This document shows, piece after piece, positions 19,666 through 63,900 of a DNA stretch of 64,000 nucleotides. The number at the start of each line of letters is the position of its first letter. Positions within the stretch are counted from its first letter, which is position 1. The translations under genes and the position numbers were made by a program. The stretch covers positions 186,001-250,000 of IMG/VR virus record IMGVR_UViG_3300032288_004964; one strand, 5' to 3'. The notes beneath the pieces are model-generated. The model ran no database searches, was not told the DNA's origin, and saw only the letters and a program-made list of their open reading frames with translations.

Positions 19666-20046
19666 ATGGAAAAGAAAAAAATCGAATTGGAATCACGTAT
19701 TTCCGAAATTATCAAAATGGATAATAAATGTCATGCTCATTTTGAATATAATAAATCTAATATCACCATAACAACATTTAATCCAATAAAGAATGAAACA
19801 TTCTTACTACTTAATATACCTTGTAGTAATGAAGTAGAAGGTTTGGAAAAAGCTTTAATTTGGGTTAAAGAACATTCAAGAGAAGAAGTATCTCATACAG
19901 TTATTTGGACAAAAAGAGGAGAAGCAAGTACATATAAATCATATTTTTACGCTTCAAATATGAGAAAAGTAATTGATAAATTTTATCATGATAAAAATGA
20001 ATTAGATTATATTATCTATGAAATTAAAGTAAATCCAATATCATGA
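19666..20046 (+). CDS. Hypothetical protein
   Basis: 126-aa ORF in operon. Confidence 0.55.
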   Translation: MEKKKIELESRISEIIKMDNKCHAHFEYNKSNITITTFNPIKNETFLLLNIPCSNEVEGLEKALIWVKEHSREEVSHTVIWTKRGEASTYKSYFYASNMRKVIDKFYHDKNELDYIIYEIKVNPIS

Positions 20047-57441: not shown

Positions 57442-58029
57442 ATGTTGTAGATTACAAAACAAGAATTAAGTCAAAAAATGACTGAATGTTATCAGACCAA
57501 AGGTCAGTCTGTTTTAGAACACGGCATTTCAGTTAAAAATTACTTATTTGATTTAGTCAATCATTTAAGAAGTAATGATCCATTACAATATGAATGGAAT
57601 CTACCAGATTGGTTATTGCAAAATAAAGACCTTATTTTATCATCATCACCAGATGATGAAACTCTAGAACTATACACAGTCTATCATGATTGTGGTAAAC
57701 CCTTTTGTACAGAAATAGATGAAAATGGTAAGAGACATTTTCCAAATCACGCGGAAGTATCTTATAACTATTTCAACCAAGTATTTAGTAACCCAGTCGC
57801 TGCAGATTTAATACTACATGATATGGACATTCATTTATTGAAATCCGATGGTGTTGTAGAATTCTGTCAGAATCCTCAAGCTTTAACTTTATTATTAACA
57901 GGTTTAGCCGAGTTACATTCAAATGCTCAAATGTTTGGTGGTACTCAATCAACCTCTTTCAAGATTAAATGGAAGAGTATTAATCAAAGAGGTAAACAAA
58001 TTATTAATCAACTAAAAAATAAAAACTAA
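57442..58029 (+). CDS. HD-domain hydrolase; probable true start 57442 with in-frame TAG at codon 3
   Basis: EHG...YHDCGKPF...HFPNHAEVS...HDMDIH motifs; ATG TTG TAG ATT is in frame with the annotated ATG at 57478. Confidence 0.7.
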
Positions 58030-58033
58030 AATT

Positions 58034-58417
58034 ATGAAAACAACAGAACAAATCAAATCAGAAATCGTTAATTATTTAACAAAAACATCAATTCACACTT
58101 TTGCGAAACCAAAATCAACTTATAAATATGGAAAAGAAGGTTCATATTATGAGTATGACTATGAAAACTTTACTTATTTCAAAGTATTTAAAAAAGATGA
58201 AGACTTTTATGTATTAGAGAATAGCAATGGTCAAAATACACCTACAACTTATAAGTTGAGAAAAATTGATATTGATTATTATATAACTTATTATGGTAAT
58301 AATGCTAAATGTGTTATTAGTAATAATTTATTCTTAGATAAAAAAATGAAGAGCACTAAGAAGAACAAGTATGTTATGTCTGAGATTGATGAAATTACTA
58401 AAAATATTACAAAATAA
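58034..58417 (+). CDS. Hypothetical protein
   Basis: 127 aa. Confidence 0.55.
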   Translation: MKTTEQIKSEIVNYLTKTSIHTFAKPKSTYKYGKEGSYYEYDYENFTYFKVFKKDEDFYVLENSNGQNTPTTYKLRKIDIDYYITYYGNNAKCVISNNLFLDKKMKSTKKNKYVMSEIDEITKNITK

Positions 58418-58449
58418 TTTGGTGGGTTAAAAAATTCATCTTATATTTG
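58418..58449 (+). promoter_or_regulatory. Bacteroidota-type sigma-A promoter (-33/-7)
   Basis: TTTG, 20-nt spacer, TATATTTG. Confidence 0.7.
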
Positions 58450-58455
58450 TATTCA

Positions 58456-58535
58456 TAAGGGTGTTAGTATAATACGCAAAACTTAATTATGATAAGCGCT
58501 TCCCATCTCGAAGGATAAAATCATAACCCTTTTTT
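58456..58535 (+). ncRNA. Candidate stand-alone small RNA of about 80 nt
   Basis: Starts about 7 nt after the -7 element; 5' AAGGG pairs with 3' CCCTT, TTATGAT pairs with ATCATAA, ends in a T-run. Confidence 0.45.
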
Positions 58536-58643
58536 GAAAAAAAATTAAAAAATATTAGGTAGATATAAAACTTTTATCTATATTTGTATAAAATAAGAAA
58601 AAAATAACAAAAGAGAGAATAATTTTTTAATATATAAGAAATA

Positions 58644-58739
58644 ATGACAACAATTCGCACACATAAACATTTTAGTAAATCGAGTAAGTGGTTTAGTCTC
58701 CACGGGTTCGGTACTAATAGCGTATTGTTTAAATTTTAA
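58644..58739 (+). promoter_or_regulatory. His/Phe/Trp(/Lys)-containing leader peptide MTTIRTHKHFSKSSKWFSLHGFGTNSVLFKF
   Basis: 31-aa ORF after TATATTTG (58579-86) and TAATATATA (58628-36), upstream of a terminator and tRNA-His/Phe/His/Trp. Confidence 0.75.
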
Positions 58740-58774
58740 GTATGATAAAATTATAAATTGACAATATTCAAATT

Positions 58775-58810
58775 AAGTCCGAACTAAAAAGTTCGGACTT
58801 TTTTGTTTTT
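58775..58810 (+). terminator. Intrinsic terminator (attenuator) directly upstream of the first tRNA
   Basis: AAGTCCGAACT-AAAA-AGTTCGGACTT perfect 11-bp stem plus TTTTGTTTTT, 4 nt before tRNA-His. Confidence 0.85.
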
Positions 58811-58814
58811 ATAT

Positions 58815-58906
58815 GGTATCGTTAATGTTAGCGGTTAGTGTTGAGAAATCAACCAGCATATGGCTCTGTGAAAGCCAAGGGATGGATTCGAATTCCATAC
58901 GATACC
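58815..58906 (+). tRNA. tRNA-His(GUG) with G-1 and a hairpin insertion in the D-loop
   Basis: GGTATCGT/ACGATACC, TGGCT-CTGTGAA-AGCCA, ATGGA-TTCGAAT-TCCAT; D-loop contains GTTGA-GAAA-TCAAC. Confidence 0.85.
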
Positions 58907-58911
58907 CAAAA

Positions 58912-58987
58912 GGAACCTAAGCTAATCAGGTGAAAGCACTAGACTGAAAATCTAGGGAGCCCGGATCGATACCGGGAGGTTCCACCA
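58912..58987 (+). tRNA. tRNA-Phe(GAA)
   Basis: GGAACCT/AGGTTCC, CTAGA-CTGAAAA-TCTAG, CCCGG-ATCGATA-CCGGG, encoded ACCA. Confidence 0.92.
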
Positions 58988-58993
58988 AAATAT

Positions 58994-59067
58994 GGTGTGT
59001 GTAGCTCAATCGGTAGAGCGTTGGTTTGTGGAGCCAAAGGCAGCGGGATCGTAACCCGTCACACACC
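58994..59067 (+). tRNA. tRNA-His(GUG), second copy
   Basis: GGTGTGTG/CACACACC (G-1:C73), GCTC/GAGC D-stem, TTGGT-TTGTGGA-GCCAA, GCGGG-ATCGTAA-CCCGT. Confidence 0.9.
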
Positions 59068-59185
59068 CTGTAAGGATGGTAATCCCCTACTTTGAGTGAA
59101 AAGTAACGATGTGACGACAATCACAGAAGAGTGAAAAGTAACAAAAAAAGTAAAATTGTACTCCTCTCTTGTCGGAGAGGTAAAT

Positions 59186-59256
59186 ACGTCATACAGACAA
59201 GGTGTCGGTCAGGTCTCCAAAACCTCGATGGCTGGGTTCGATTCCTGGATGGCGTG
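59186..59256 (+). tRNA. tRNA-Trp(CCA)
   Basis: ACGTCAT/ATGGCGT acceptor, AGGT-CTCCAAA-ACCT, CTGGG-TTCGATT-CCTGG, G73. Confidence 0.85.
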
Positions 59257-59262
59257 CAAAAA

Positions 59263-59307
59263 ATGAAATATAAAAAAATGAAAACTAAAATGAAATATAA
59301 ACGATAG
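59263..59307 (+). promoter_or_regulatory. Lys-rich mini-ORF MKYKKMKTKMKYKR followed by an 11-bp hairpin, upstream of three tRNA-Lys genes
   Basis: 7 AAA codons in 14; stop TAG overlaps GGCAACGGTTC-ATAC-GGATCGTTGCC (59307-59332). Confidence 0.45.
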
Positions 59308-59345
59308 GCAACGGTTCATACGGATCGTTGCCCAAACAAGACAAT

Positions 59346-59418
59346 GATTCCGTAGCTCAATTGGTGGAGCTTCTGGCTTTTAACCAGAAGGTTGTGGGTT
59401 CAAACCCCACCGGGATCA
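59346..59418 (+). tRNA. tRNA-Lys(UUU), canonical type I
   Basis: GATTCCG/CGGGATC, TCTGG-CTTTTAA-CCAGA, GTGGG-TTCAAAC-CCCAC. Confidence 0.92.
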
Positions 59419-59427
59419 CTAAAAATA

Positions 59428-59512
59428 GATCCTGTCGCTTAGCGGCTATAGCAACTGGCTTTTAACCAGTAGAGAGAAATCTCAACCGTGGGTTCGAGTC
59501 CCACCAGGATCA
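59428..59512 (+). tRNA. tRNA-Lys(UUU) with long variable arm
   Basis: GATCCTG/CAGGATC, ACTGG-CTTTTAA-CCAGT, 17-nt variable region A-GAGA-GAAA-TCTC-AACC. Confidence 0.88.
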
Positions 59513-59517
59513 CTAAA

Positions 59518-59598
59518 GCTTTCGTCGCTTAGTGGCTATAGCAACTGGCTCTTAACCAGTCGAGAAATCAACCGTGGGTTCGAGTCCCACCGAAAGCA
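59518..59598 (+). tRNA. tRNA-Lys(CUU) with extended variable arm
   Basis: GCTTTCG/CGAAAGC, ACTGG-CTCTTAA-CCAGT, 13-nt variable region C-GA-GAAA-TC-AACC. Confidence 0.88.
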
Positions 59599-59607
59599 CA
59601 AATATAT

Positions 59608-59737
59608 GGGGAGTTAGCTCAGTGGTAGAGTATATATAACCTCTTTTGAAATTTTACCTCACAAGAGTGTTGATTAAAAGAGTTACTTCGTTTGAATTGA
59701 AATCAAAAGGTCATAGGTTCGAATCCTATACTCCCCG
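59608..59737 (+). tRNA. Interrupted tRNA-like gene of uncertain identity, with a 58-nt insertion between the D-arm and anticodon arm
   Basis: GGGGAGT/ACTCCCC acceptor, GCTC-AGTGGTA-GAGT D-arm, ATAGG-TTCGAAT-CCTAT T-arm, TTTGA-ATTGAAA-TCAAA arm. Confidence 0.6.
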
Positions 59738-59756
59738 CAAAAAAGAAAAATAAATT

Positions 59757-59831
59757 ATGAAAAATATTAATACATCAAAGTCGTCAAGTAGTCGCTCGTC
59801 AAGAATGAGTGAGATTCGATTGTATTCATAA
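59757..59831 (+). promoter_or_regulatory. Ser/Arg-rich leader peptide MKNINTSKSSSSRSSRMSEIRLYS
   Basis: 24 aa with 9 Ser and 3 Arg codons, upstream of a terminator and tRNA-Arg plus three tRNA-Ser. Confidence 0.8.
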
Positions 59832-59850
59832 TAGTCAGAAGATATTTATG

Positions 59851-59888
59851 AAACCCTCGAATCTAATGATTTGAGGGTTTTTTATTTT
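59851..59888 (+). terminator. Intrinsic terminator (attenuator) directly upstream of tRNA-Arg
   Basis: AAACCCTCGAATC-TAAT-GATTTGAGGGTTT 13-bp stem (one G-U) plus TTTATTTT. Confidence 0.85.
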
Positions 59889-59893
59889 AATAT

Positions 59894-59967
59894 GGTTCCA
59901 TCGTTCAACTGGATAGGACACTCGGCTACGAACCGAGAGATTGGGGATTCGAATTCCTCTGGAACTA
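59894..59967 (+). tRNA. tRNA-Arg(ACG)
   Basis: GGTTCCA/TGGAACT, CTCGG-CTACGAA-CCGAG, GGGGA-TTCGAAT-TCCTC. Confidence 0.92.
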
Positions 59968-59972
59968 CAAAA

Positions 59973-60059
59973 GGAAAAGTAACTTAGCCGGCGCTAAGCA
60001 CAGTCTTGAAAACTGCTGGTACCTACGGGTATGGGGATCGACACCTCACTTTTTCGCCA
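59973..60059 (+). tRNA. tRNA-Ser(UGA), atypical (6-bp D-stem, can fold 8/4)
   Basis: GGAAAAGT/ACTTTTTC, CTTAGC-CGGC-GCTAAG, CAGT-CTTGAAA-ACTG, long variable arm, GCCA end. Confidence 0.85.
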
Positions 60060-60062
60060 AAT

Positions 60063-60148
60063 GGAGAGTAATCTAGTCTGGTGACTAGCACCGCCTGCTA
60101 AGCGTGTGGTACGTTTAATCGTATGGAGTTCAATTCTTCTACTCTCCG
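60063..60148 (+). tRNA. tRNA-Ser(GCU), 8/4 cloverleaf
   Basis: GGAGAGTA/TACTCTCC 8-bp acceptor, GGAG-TTCAATT-CTTC 4-bp T-stem, CTAGTC-TGGT-GACTAG D-arm, CT-GCT-AA loop. Confidence 0.85.
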
Positions 60149-60153
60149 CAAAA

Positions 60154-60239
60154 GGAAGATAATCTAGTCTGGTGACTAGCCACGCCTGGAAAGCGTTGGG
60201 TGCGTTCAATCGCATGGGATTCGATTTCTCTATCTTCCG
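60154..60239 (+). tRNA. tRNA-Ser(GGA), 8/4 cloverleaf
   Basis: GGAAGATA/TATCTTCC 8-bp acceptor, GGGA-TTCGATT-TCTC 4-bp T-stem, same D-arm, CT-GGA-AA loop. Confidence 0.85.
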
Positions 60240-60242
60240 CAA

Positions 60243-60539
60243 ATGGTAGCAATAGTTAAAATAAAAATTACATACTTTAGAAAGTCAGCAAGTGCTGAAG
60301 ATGGTAGTATTATTTGGGTTTATAAAACTAAAGATGAATCATTACATAACGGTAGTGGAATAAGTGAATCAGCTTTAGACAGAAGTGGTTATAAATTAAT
60401 GAAATATAATAGTGATTTAGAACAATATGCAATTGACTTATCATTTAATGGTAAAAAAGATATAATTTATTCATCAATTGAAAGTGAAATTAGACCTTTA
60501 TTAAGAAACAAATTATTAACAGAATTATTAGAATATTAA
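60243..60539 (+). CDS. Hypothetical protein with C-terminal RNKLLTELL motif
   Basis: 98 aa starting just after the last tRNA. Confidence 0.5.
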   Translation: MVAIVKIKITYFRKSASAEDGSIIWVYKTKDESLHNGSGISESALDRSGYKLMKYNSDLEQYAIDLSFNGKKDIIYSSIESEIRPLLRNKLLTELLEY

Positions 60540-60540
60540 A

Positions 60541-60852
60541 ATGGAAACAATATATTTAAGACATAGAAGAGGTTCTACCTCATTTGAAGGAACTTTGAGT
60601 TTACTTCAAGATTTATTAACATCTAGATTACTTCCTGGATATAGAAGAATTTGGGTACAAGGTAGTAACTCAGGTAGAGCAAATTTAGTATTTACTATTT
60701 TTCAAGATGGTAGAGATTATAGAATGGAGTTTTTAACTATTTCAAGTTTTAGACAATGGAGACCTGACGGTGACATTGAAACAGAAATTAGATTAATTGA
60801 AGAATTGATTGATAGATTAAAATCGGATATTTTATCAAAAATTATAGAATAA
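60541..60852 (+). CDS. Hypothetical protein
   Basis: 103 aa. Confidence 0.5.
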   Translation: METIYLRHRRGSTSFEGTLSLLQDLLTSRLLPGYRRIWVQGSNSGRANLVFTIFQDGRDYRMEFLTISSFRQWRPDGDIETEIRLIEELIDRLKSDILSKIIE

Positions 60853-60958
60853 AGAAAGGATAAATGATATATAGAATTATGAAAGTCATAAAATATATCA
60901 TTTATCCCTTTGTTTATTATATTCAATGTAGAATTGAATCTAGAAAGAACTTTTAAAA

Positions 60959-63900
60959 CTAATCATATACTCTTATTTCAATTGATGCTCCCATGAGGCC
61001 GTCAACTAATACATTAAAATTGAAATAAGTAGCTAATAATATTTGAGATGTATAAACTGCCGGTACAACTGTTCTATCAGGTGCTGCAGTATTAGTAATA
61101 AAAACAACACATTTAGTTGGATCAAACAACACATTTGTTGCTTGATAGACACCAGTTGATACATAGTCCCATGTTGGATTAAATCCAAGTGTATTTTTAA
61201 AAACCTGTGTTGTTGTTAATGATGATGTAACACCATATCCATTACCAATTAGATTGGCAACATATACTTTATATCCATTGGATAAATTAGATGATGCTGT
61301 CCAAGTACCAACACCATTAGTATCAGATACTAAAACATAACCATCTGATTGTGTTGTATCTTCTAATCTAAATGCTCCTGATTGTGTAGCATAAACATGC
61401 AATTTAGCAGTAGATGATGCTGTTCCTATACCCACTTGACCATTAAATACATATTTATGTAGAGTACCAGATTCTCCAAAATTAAATTCATTATCTTGTG
61501 TAGTTATAGAATTATATCCAATTGCCCAAGAGTTATTATGTGATGACACAGCATTTCTACCTATTGCTACACCTCTAACACTTGAGTTAACAGTCGATGA
61601 TCTACCAATTGCTATACCATCTGTTGTACCTGAAACAATATTTGAAAATAAACCAACCGCTATACCATCATCAGATGAGACTACACCAGACCCAATAGCA
61701 ATAGCTCCACCATTTCCAGAGTCATTAAGTGTATTACCATTACCTATTGATATATTAGGTGCTCCAAATCCTTGACTCATCTTAATAGCTGTATAAGATC
61801 CAATATTATATGAACTAGAAAGTCCTGATAATTTAATATTACCACTTACTTCTAATTTTTCGGAAGGAGTTGTGGTTCCAATTCCAACATTTGAGCCAGT
61901 TACATAAATAGAACTTGTTGATGAAAGTGTTGTAGATGATGTATAATAAGGCACATAATTAGTACTTCCTGATAATGAAGTGCTTGATGTTGCTATCAAT
62001 AATCCATCAACACTTACTGCTACAAGACAAGAAACTGATGATGTCATAGATGTTATAATGATATCATTAGCATGAGCCGTATATTGTCTACTTGCGGTTA
62101 TGTTAGATCCTAAAATAGAAGATCCTGTCATACCATTTGTAGTATTATTACATCCACCAATTATAGAACCAAATGGTGCATTTGAAGTATTACAATAACC
62201 CCCACCTATAGCAGAATAAGATGAGCAATATCCAGAAATTGTATTTTGTTGACCACCTCCTATTGTTGAAAATGATGAATTAGTACCTGATATTGTATTT
62301 GCTATACCACCTCCTATTGTTGAATTAATTGAAGAATACCCAGAGATTGTATTTGAATTACCACCATTTATAGTTGAGTGATACGAATAATAACCTGAGA
62401 TTGTATTTTGTTGACCACCACCTATATTTGAGTTATTTGAATATTGACCACTTATTGAGTTTAATGATCCACCATTTATAGTTGAGTTGTATGAGTTGAA
62501 TCCAGATATTGTATTTTGTTGACCACCTCCTACTGTTGAACTATATGAATTAAATCCAGATATTGTATTTAATGTACCACCGCTTATAGTTGATCTATAT
62601 GAATTTGTACCAGATATTACGTTTTGAACACCTCCGCTTATAGTTGAGCAATGTGAATAAGTACCACATATTTTGTTTAAGCGTCCGCCTCCTATTGTTG
62701 AATCTATTGAGCAGTATCCAGATATTTCGTTTTGTCTACCACCAGATATAGTTGATTGATGAGAGAATTGACCTGAGATTGTATTTTGACATCCACCACT
62801 TATAGTTGAAGAGTTACTAGTAGCTCCAGAGATAATATTACAAGAACCTCCACTTATTGTTGAATAATATGAAATATTTCCAGAGATTAAATTACAATAT
62901 CCACCGCTTATAGTTGAAATAGTAGAAGTATTACCAGAGATTGTATTAAGTTTACCACCACCTATAAATGATTGATATGAGTAAAGACCAGAAACTATAT
63001 TATAATAACCACCACTTATAGTTGAAAAACATGAATTGGTACCAGAAATTGAATTAGATCTACCACCGCTTATAGTTGAATATTCCGAATTAATTCCAGA
63101 TATTATATTGGCGTTTCCTCCTCCTATTGCTGAAAAAAATGAGTTAGAACCAGAGATTGTATTACAAGAACCTCCTCCTATTGTCGAATTATCTGAATTA
63201 GGACCAGATATTGTGTTCGTCTGTCCACCGGATATAGTAGAGTAATATGAATTAATTCCAGAAATTGTATTATCACATCCACCACTTATAGTTGATTGAT
63301 ATGAATTTGTACCTGAAATTTTATTTAATTGACCACCAGATATAGTGGAATAATAAGAAGATTTACCAGAGATTGTATTAGTACTACCACCACCTATAGC
63401 TGAGTAATATGAACATTCTCCAGAGATTGTATTTGTTAGACCACCACTTATTGTAGATCTATATGAATTTGTACCTGAAATTATATTATTATAACCCCCA
63501 CCTATAGTAGAAGAATCTGAATTATATCCTGATATTGTATTAGTACCACCACCACTTATAGTTGATTGATATGAATAACAACCAGAGATTGTATTAGTAC
63601 TACCACCACTTATAGTTGATTTTTGTGAGTAAAAACCAGAGATTGTATTAGTACTACCACCACTTATAGTTGATTTTTGTGAATAATATCCAGATATTGT
63701 ATTTTGCTGACCACCTCCTATAGTTGATAAGCACGCACTGTAGTATGATGAAACTGTATTACAACATCCACCACTTATAGTTGATAAACATGAACTCTCT
63801 ATACAATTACAATAACCACCACTTATAGTTGAACAATTTGAGCTAGATATATAATTAAAATAACCACCACTTATAGTTGATCTATATGAATAAGAGCAGA

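Follow-up and report, generated by a model that had tools for sequence, protein, structure and literature searches.

In a huge phage, a short leader ORF rich in His, Lys, Phe and Trp codons sits before a transcription stop signal and the tRNA genes for those amino acids. Related phages repeat this design for their other tRNA clusters, suggesting that they make tRNAs only when the matching codons are read slowly. The window analysed here, a stretch of 64,000 nucleotides, comes from a 385-kb IMG/VR phage contig (IMGVR_UViG_3300032288_004964, positions 186,001 to 250,000). The nearest records in the phage collection are LR745206 (634 kb) and LR756502 (642 kb), genomes of the ‘Mahaphage’ clade predicted to infect Bacteroidetes (PMC7162821), and in both of them the ORF, terminator and array are conserved. 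An initial annotation, made from the sequence alone, had proposed a His/Phe/Trp leader with terminator-antiterminator pairing. We confirm what it observed, and our analysis supports its interpretation, with the corrections and amendments given below.

The region 58400-60300 is AT-rich and carries a dense array of tRNA genes on the plus strand. Its features, all on the plus strand, are as follows.

58555-58586 (+), promoter-like site of Bacteroidota type: TTAG (58555-58, one mismatch to the -33 TTTG), a 20-nt spacer, then the -7 box TATATTTG (58579-86).
58628-58646 (+), invariant 19-nt translation start region TAATATATAAGAAATAATG, without a Shine-Dalgarno sequence, shared by leader families with different peptides.
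58644-58739 (+), leader ORF of 31 codons plus stop, encoding MTTIRTHKHFSKSSKWFSLHGFGTNSVLFKF.
58662-58694 (+), proposed sensor codons 7-17 (H K H F S K S S K W F).
58672-58684 (+), region 1, the protector: UUAGU (58672-76) and AUCGAG (58679-84), which pair with region 2.
58705-58718 (+), region 2, the 5' strand of the antiterminator: GGUUCGG-U-ACUAAU, over codons 21-25.
58775-58810 (+), intrinsic terminator: 5' arm 58775-85 (region 3), loop AAAA, 3' arm 58790-58800 (region 4), then the T-run TTTTTTGTTTTT ending at 58810.
58815-58901 (+), tRNA-His-like gene (anticodon GUG, G-1/C73) with an aberrant D region, starting 4 nt after the T-run.
58912-59068 (+), tRNA-Phe(GAA) 58912-58987 and tRNA-His(GUG) 58995-59068.
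59186-59257 (+), tRNA-Trp(CCA), non-canonical.
59278-59332 (+), Lys mini-ORF MKTKMKYKR* (59278-59307; the longer form MKYKKMKTKMKYKR starts at 59263), followed by an 11-bp hairpin (59307-59332) that abuts the stop codon and has no T-run.
59346-59599 (+), tRNA-Lys(UUU) 59346-59419, tRNA-Lys(UUU) 59428-59513 and tRNA-Lys(CUU) 59518-59599, the last two with long variable-arm insertions.
59757-59831 (+), second leader ORF MKNINTSKSSSSRSSRMSEIRLYS, with 9 Ser codons (TCA x4, TCG x2, AGT x3) and 3 Arg codons (CGC, AGA, CGA).
59812-59887 (+), second attenuator: antiterminator AGAUUCGA (59812-19) pairs with UCGAAUCU (59857-64); the terminator stem 59850-59881 has 14 pairs and is followed by a T-run.
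59894-60240 (+), tRNA-Arg(ACG) 59894-59968, tRNA-Ser(UGA) 59973-60059, tRNA-Ser(GCU) 60062-60149 and tRNA-Ser(GGA) 60157-60240.

The 31-codon ORF contains His x3 (CAT, CAT, CAC), Phe x5, Trp x1 and Lys x4, as the initial annotation had counted. After a further 35 nt comes a canonical intrinsic terminator with a stem at 58775-58800 (11 pairs and a 4-nt loop), which is one of the two best terminator-like sites in a 4-kb scan. The proposed complementarity is also where it had been placed: GTTCGG(T)ACT lies at 58706-15 and AGTCCGAAC at 58776-84, and they pair as 9 bp with one bulge. Folding of the alternative states had been suggested as a check on the proposal. When 58700-58788, the RNA present before the 3' arm of the terminator is made, was folded with RNAfold, the result was a helix between 58705-15 and 58776-85, i.e. 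the proposed pairing extended by a G.U pair, three A-U pairs and an inner helix, at -17 kcal/mol. Folding the whole leader instead gave the terminator together with a helix between 58672-84 (codons 10-14) and 58707-17, and this fold is better than all 200 shuffles (z = -3.85). Region 2 can therefore pair either with region 1 or with the 5' arm of the terminator, which is the classical 1:2 / 2:3 / 3:4 layout of mutually exclusive helices.

Two points of the initial annotation required correction. The gene it named as tRNA-His, 4 nt after the T-run, has an anticodon loop CUGUGAA, a T arm and a 7-bp acceptor stem with G-1/C73, but its D region is aberrant, and neither ARAGORN nor the Rfam tRNA model calls it. 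The gene was recognized by eye; the homologous gene in LR745206 is called tRNA-His, and a similar aberrant form is carried by L070 (L numbers denote individual loci recovered in the searches described below). The first tRNAs called at default thresholds are Phe (58912) and His (58995), which ARAGORN calls and which score 56.1 and 59.6 bits against the Rfam tRNA model. The second correction concerns the protector. TTAGT (58693-97) and ACTAA (58713-17), which had been proposed to hold the antiterminator, exist, but their pairing is not supported: it shows no covariation, and its end pair is broken in 12 of 17 relatives. The helix supported by both folding and covariation is 58672-76 plus 58679-84 pairing with 58707-17.

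Downstream of tRNA-Phe and tRNA-His, the array continues with tRNA-Trp, called by ARAGORN at a relaxed threshold and homologous to the tRNA-Trp called in LR745206, the three tRNA-Lys genes, an interrupted tRNA-like gene, tRNA-Arg and three tRNA-Ser genes. The Ser genes were called by ARAGORN at relaxed thresholds, and Rfam places them in the tRNA clan through hits to the tRNA-Sec model, which reflect the long variable arm. An Rfam scan of 57500-61500 at E <= 1 returned only tRNAs above threshold; the hits to leader families are below threshold and rest mostly on the terminator hairpin. The short stretch between a first promoter-like site (58421-50) and a T-run at 58530-35 shows no significant structure (z = -0.10), and a Pfam scan of the flanking ORFs gave only a sub-threshold HD-domain hit.

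Lack of conservation of the ORF had been named in advance as an outcome that would refute the proposal, and the ORF proved to be conserved. It is kept, with 28-33 codons, in 17 distinct relatives of the same peptide family (family A), and pN/pS over codons 2-18 is 0.37, with synonymous variation at K8, S13, K15 and S18. We then examined the helices on a MAFFT alignment not fitted to any structure. The antiterminator is paired in 85% of cells, 6 of 10 pairs change on both sides, the covariation score is reached by 0 of 500 shuffles, and slid controls give 6-53%. The terminator is paired in 95% of cells, with 8 of 11 pairs changing on both sides, and the protector is paired in 95% of cells, with 3 of 11 pairs changing on both sides and slid controls of 29-48%. 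In each case, slid controls fall to 6-63%. The inner helix of the antiterminator (GUAUUG/CAAUAU) was 29% paired in columns one position out of register and 79% paired at the -1 slide, and was not pursued further. The conservation of the ORF and its covarying helices puts the feature far beyond chance.

Concrete examples of the coordinated change are GTTCGG/CCGAAC in the window, ACTTGG/CCAAGT in L014, L048, L079 and L087, AGATCCGG/CCGGATCT in L018, TCTGAGGGTT/AACCCTCAGA in L106 (a locus of another leader family, family C) and, for the second attenuator, ATTCGA/TCGAAT versus ATCCGA/TCGGAT in L097. In an alignment-free test on 44 distinct leaders of five families, the 3' part of the ORF pairs with its own terminator 5' arm at a mean of -11.1 kcal/mol, against -6.5 for arms of other loci, and in 30 of 44 no foreign arm does better. 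Several family-B loci with a swapped terminator (L016, L068, L123) show no better pairing with their own arm than with foreign arms. The pairing site is always at codons 19-27. All 44 leaders carry a terminator 14-36 nt after the stop codon (22-36 nt in 41 of 44), and in 38 of 44 a tRNA gene starts within about 40 nt of the terminator stem, which leaves no room for a promoter.

To find further leaders, we used the 19 nt of the start region (TAATATATAAGAAATAATG) as an unbiased probe, since they say nothing about the peptide or the tRNAs. Exact matches were found at 4 viral and at least 120 metagenome loci. Fifty-nine of these loci carry short leaders that fall into five peptide families, and each family precedes a matching set of tRNA genes. 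The families, with a second form of each pattern in parentheses, are listed here.

HKHFSK..KWFS (M.TI.THKHFSKSSKWFS): His, Phe, Trp, Lys.
QVNPQPQDQD (MKTINVNIAQVNPQPQDQD): Gln, Pro, Asp.
MNLNINLNLTMVVNTLCIR (MKTMNLNINLNLTMVVNTLCIRT): Leu, Arg(UCU), Asn, Thr, Cys, Val, Ile, Met.
SSSSSRSSR (MKTIINISSSSSRSSR): Arg(ACG), Ser.
MKTVNTYYSYESEE: sequence cut off by the contig end.

A second scan did not use the start region and looked only for a terminator directly before a run of tRNA genes. It added more leaders.

YYYEAYEE: Glu x3, Tyr.
ITIAIIGGGAGAG: Ile(UAU), Gly.
QQLQQQQ: Gln.
LNLLLN: Leu x6.

In the complete genome LR745206, of which 95 kb were examined, the three tRNA regions found all carry matched leaders, including NIASYESYYEE before Tyr/Glu genes. 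A TAnnTTTG box is found 54-67 nt before the ATG in 38 of 41 distinct upstream regions, with TTTG lying 19-20 nt upstream of it in 23, and this is the consensus of Bacteroides promoters. The remaining 19-mer hits are unrelated genes. ‘Family E’ (MKRKGVKKTVPTDGAATILR) shares the 19-mer but lies next to a membrane-protein gene, with no tRNA and no RNA family hit, and we treat it as unrelated, as we do the long proteins MDNQLKRN... and MTSIIQRAF... and the 46-aa MMTAKVC... A scan of a one-genome-per-species set of cellular genomes with the 19-mer gave 11 hits, none of them a leader plus tRNA unit, and the cassette was not found in this set.

The correspondence between peptide and tRNA genes was tested using one representative of each of ten families. 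The summed fraction of residues 2-19 that match the tRNA set behind them is 5.17, whereas permuting the sets among leaders gives 1.79 +/- 0.53, and none of 200,000 permutations reaches the observed value. Matched residues concentrate in codons 5-19 (87 of 150), upstream of region 2, rather than in later codons (23 of 100; Fisher p = 4e-8), and this is the zone where a stalled ribosome would leave region 2 free. The leader in the window also holds Thr, Asn and Ile codons (the shared MxTIN start) that its array does not match, and its Ser codons are matched only by the tRNA-Ser genes behind the second attenuator. The match also holds at codon level: three of the four Ile codons are ATA in the leader before tRNA-Ile(UAU), against ATC/ATT before Ile(GAU); leaders of Arg(UCU) arrays use AGA or AGG in 8 of 8 Arg codons; and leaders of Arg(ACG) arrays use mainly CGN. 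Within one family, the leader follows the content of the array. In L022, the Leu genes form a separate array behind their own Leu-rich leader, and the neighbouring leader has more Arg and fewer Leu codons.

The window holds a second unit of this type. Codons 19-21 of the Ser/Arg leader (59757-59831) pair with the 5' arm of the terminator at 59850-81, the leader folds with z = -4.84, and tRNA-Arg(ACG) and three tRNA-Ser genes follow. Its Ser codons are TCA, TCG and AGT, which the UGA and GCU anticodons read, and homologues lie in front of tRNA-Arg/Ser genes in L001, L002, L048, L049, L070, L075, L079, L097 and L115. The Lys mini-ORF, before the three tRNA-Lys genes, is conserved as MKTK.KYK(R/Q) in ten of the distinct loci listed, with a divergent Lys/Arg-rich form in L049. 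The sequence of its hairpin differs between loci but stays paired, and tRNA-Lys genes always follow. The hairpin has no T-run, this element does not fit the same scheme, and we have no explanation of how it works.

The best explanation, which we hold with fairly high confidence, is ribosome-mediated transcription attenuation of the trp/his-leader type that controls tRNA genes rather than biosynthetic genes. In this view, transcription starts at the Bacteroidota-type promoter (58555-86), and the leader is translated from the conserved start region. When decoding is fast, the ribosome would run over region 2, or region 1 would hold region 2, so that the terminator forms and RNA polymerase stops 4 nt before the first tRNA gene. 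When His, Lys, Phe, Trp or Ser codons 7-17 are read slowly, the stalled ribosome would cover region 1, region 2 would pair with the 5' arm of the terminator, and transcription would run into the array of His-like, Phe, His, Trp and Lys tRNA genes. The newly made phage tRNAs would then speed up leader translation and shut the array off again, giving a negative feedback loop that supplies tRNA on demand. The second unit would gate tRNA-Arg and three tRNA-Ser genes in the same way. Relative to the initial annotation, the leader reports on Lys (and probably Ser) codons in addition to His, Phe and Trp, the protector is a different segment, and the leader is one member of a modular family that covers most or all phage tRNA clusters, which is the stronger argument. 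What the sequences themselves establish is the conserved ORF, the covariation in all three helices and the codon-to-tRNA correspondence across many leader families; that the leader is translated, that transcription terminates at the predicted site, the direction of the response, the coupling of ribosome and polymerase, and the feedback are our inferences, made without expression, ribosome or termination data. The interpretation, as supported here, widens into a general design of this phage clade.

We modelled a 28-nt ribosome footprint on the nascent RNA at equilibrium. With the A site on codons 1-17, the 5' arm of the terminator is paired upstream with P = 0.98, and on codons 19-27 this falls to 0.22-0.41. 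However, a ribosome at the stop codon does not cover region 2, and the 5' arm is still paired upstream with P = 0.71; with no ribosome, the antiterminator wins (P = 0.95). Termination in replete conditions must therefore rest on kinetics, which were not modelled, i.e. on the ribosome being on codons 19-27 while the terminator is transcribed or on early folding of 1:2. The scheme also requires that Bacteroidota couple translation to transcription tightly enough, on which we have no information. Slow decoding caused by amino-acid starvation would not be relieved by more tRNA, so the loop only makes sense if tRNA supply is what limits decoding. For the second leader, the model was uninformative, because the 5' arm finds local partners whatever is masked, and direct folds were used instead.

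Of the alternatives, the one that survives best, although we consider it unlikely, is that the leader is translated and controls read-through but reports general translation capacity or amino-acid starvation (charging), for example to time tRNA expression to a stage of infection. A leader-peptide attenuator cannot by itself tell low tRNA abundance from low charging, as is established for the trp and his leaders, and all leaders share one promoter type and one start region. Against this alternative, a general sensor would need neither a different codon set for each array nor codon-level matching to the anticodons present, such as ATA with Ile(UAU) and AGR with Arg(UCU), and these array-specific and anticodon-specific codon sets argue that tRNA supply is the relevant variable.

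Still less likely is that two unrelated things lie side by side, a small-peptide gene ending with its own constitutive terminator or insulator and tRNA genes expressed by leaky read-through or from elsewhere, with no regulatory role for the complementarity. The terminator is strong and canonical, the peptide tail (GT.SVL) is fairly conserved in family A, and there is no experimental proof of switching. However, the pairing between ORF and terminator arm covaries, which a passive terminator does not explain, the peptide composition tracks the tRNA identities across ten families and even within a family (L022), there is no room for a promoter between T-run and tRNA, and peptides of different families share only the first four or five residues. 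The weakest alternative, RNA-only sensing in which the leader binds tRNAs through codon-anticodon contacts like a T-box and the ORF is incidental, draws on the presence of the codons of the downstream tRNAs and on a switch resembling the expression platform of T-box RNAs, but it is very unlikely because nothing in 57500-61500 matches a T-box or any riboswitch family even at E <= 1, the reading frame, ATG and stop position are kept in all relatives, synonymous changes are tolerated, runs of many different codons (QQQQ, SSSSSS, YYY, GGG) fit ribosome stalling rather than a single specifier codon, and an invariant translation start region precedes every leader.

A more speculative possibility, which we regard as doubtful but not excluded, is that the leaders form a per-codon surveillance network that detects loss of host tRNAs during infection, including cleavage by host anticodon nucleases used as anti-phage defence, and switches on exactly the matching phage tRNA genes. 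Several of these genes have unusual arms (long variable arms in tRNA-Lys, aberrant D regions in His and Trp) that might make them poor nuclease substrates. On this reading, the system would be an inducible counter-defence as well as a supply regulator, a possibility of great interest if true.

Why phages carry tRNA genes is a long-standing question, and the proposals include codon-usage compensation, replacement of degraded host tRNAs and escape from tRNA-cleaving defences. An attenuator whose sensor codons mirror the tRNA genes behind it says that the phage makes these tRNAs when, and only when, decoding of those codons is slow, which turns the question into one of which perturbation opens which array. 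As far as our literature searches show, it would be the first case of tRNA genes regulated by leader-peptide attenuation, and the first autoregulatory loop in which the product of the controlled gene is the very molecule read by the sensor. It is also a natural, modular set of codon-specific translation-speed sensors, covering at least 19 amino acids in the loci examined and usable as reporters of decoding capacity.

Arrays of phage tRNA genes occur in large phages such as T4 and T5 and in the huge phages of Al-Shayeb et al. 2020 (PMC7162821), the study that includes the 634-kb and 642-kb genomes nearest to the window. That paper reports tRNA counts but does not contain the words ‘attenuator’ or ‘leader peptide’. 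Full-text searches of about 8.4 million papers and preprints found no report of leader peptides or attenuators in front of tRNA genes, in phages or in cells, although absence from that library is not proof of novelty; one mention of a ‘tRNA operon’ in a pheL paper was irrelevant. T-box riboswitches likewise use a terminator/antiterminator switch that responds to the state of a specific tRNA and controls translation-related genes, but they bind uncharged tRNA directly and need no translation, whereas here the ORF is under coding constraint and the scan of 57500-61500 gave no T-box match.

Mechanistically, the element satisfies every sequence-level criterion of the leader-peptide transcription attenuators of amino-acid operons (trpL, hisL, pheL, thrL, leuL and the multivalent ilvL of ilvGMEDA). 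It has a short ORF conserved as an ORF, codons that relate to the regulated genes, an intrinsic terminator between leader and genes, an antiterminator that shares a strand with the terminator and has its other strand in the ORF, and an upstream protector helix overlapping the regulatory codons, whose possible pausing role was not tested. Whether read-through rises when these codons are translated slowly was not measured here. In those operons, stalling on the regulatory codons frees the antiterminator, and ilvL and thrL are precedents for leaders that sense several amino acids at once. Here, by contrast, the regulated genes are tRNA genes, so the product acts back on the sensor itself, the leader is a mixed ‘barcode’ of up to eight amino acids that mirrors the array, the family is modular, sits in a phage and shares one promoter type and one start region, and the stop codon lies about 20 nt past region 2, not over it. 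The element is not a member of the Rfam leader families: Thr_leader (RF00506) scores 22.3 bits at 58751-58807 against a gathering threshold of 55, and His_leader (RF00514) scores 28 bits at 59772-59886 against 49. Conceptually, the nearest case is the pheM leader of the pheST operon (Phe-tRNA synthetase) in E. coli, a leader-peptide attenuator that regulates a component of the decoding machinery in response to charged tRNA-Phe. It is cellular, controls a synthetase and senses a single amino acid, whereas here the tRNA itself is controlled and many codon sets are involved.

The window contains a second promoter-like site of the same type as the one before the first leader. It lies just after the upstream gene, with TTTG at 58421-24 and TATATTTG at 58443-50, and is followed by about 80 nt ending in CCCTTTTTT (58421-58536 in all). 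The stretch after the promoter-like site has no significant structure when folded (z = -0.10) and gave no Rfam hit.

Some of the tRNA genes behind the first leader also depart from the usual forms. The tRNA-His-like gene at 58815-58901 has a normal anticodon arm, T arm and acceptor stem, but a long aberrant D region containing a GAAA-capped hairpin. A similar form recurs in another phage contig (L070), so it is probably not a decayed copy. Between tRNA-His and tRNA-Trp, the stretch 59069-59185 has no called tRNA, whereas LR745206 and LR756502 have a second tRNA-Phe at the same place, and LR745206 has a further tRNA-like sequence. This is probably gene loss in the window's phage.

At 59263-59332, directly before three tRNA-Lys genes, we see a Lys-rich mini-ORF (MKYKKMKTKMKYKR; conserved core MKTK.KYK(R/Q)) whose stop codon abuts an 11-bp hairpin with no T-run. 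The hairpin differs in sequence between loci but stays paired. The element does not fit the terminator/antiterminator scheme, and it could be a pause, processing or ribosome-opened element. Two of the tRNA-Lys genes that follow, at 59428-59513 and 59518-59599, carry insertions of 9-13 nt in the variable region, as seen in the Rfam alignment, although tRNA-Lys is normally a short-arm tRNA.

A tRNA-like gene at 59608-59756 has a GGGGAGT...ACTCCCC acceptor stem and good D and T arms, but it is interrupted by tens of nucleotides around the anticodon region. Running ARAGORN in its intron mode gave an implausible Phe(AAA) with a 34-nt intron, and Rfam matches only the 3' half of the gene. Directly after a tRNA-like gene, and with no promoter box in the window, comes a second complete attenuator (59757-59887), which consists of a Ser/Arg-rich leader, an antiterminator at 59812-19 and a 14-pair terminator, and which gates tRNA-Arg(ACG) and three tRNA-Ser genes. 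In LR745206, a TACATTTG box precedes this second unit.

In two loci of family C, one of the leader peptide families (L061 and L106), 170-200 nt holding a further short ORF lie between the leader's terminator and the first tRNA. In LR745206, at about 364,830-364,945 (positions 19830-19945 of the segment L139), a tRNA-Met(CAT) gene is preceded by the first part of the conserved 5' region (CCTTTTTAATATATA) but has no leader ORF and no terminator, and this tRNA appears to be expressed without attenuation.

The same 19-nt start region that heads the leaders also precedes a long protein beginning MDNQLKRNTLFNPSGD, in the locus L130 and in many metagenome loci (for example L015, L019 and L024), including in a contig of a Prevotella MAG. 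By eye, this protein looks like a ribonucleotide reductase small subunit, an assignment that was not tested, and the start region of the leaders may copy a strong Bacteroidota translation start. Within the window, the ORF two genes upstream (57478-58029) has a sub-threshold match to the HD domain (20.9 bits against 22), and it has DNA-level relatives in Tenacibaculum phage pT24 and Ralstonia phage RsoM2USA.
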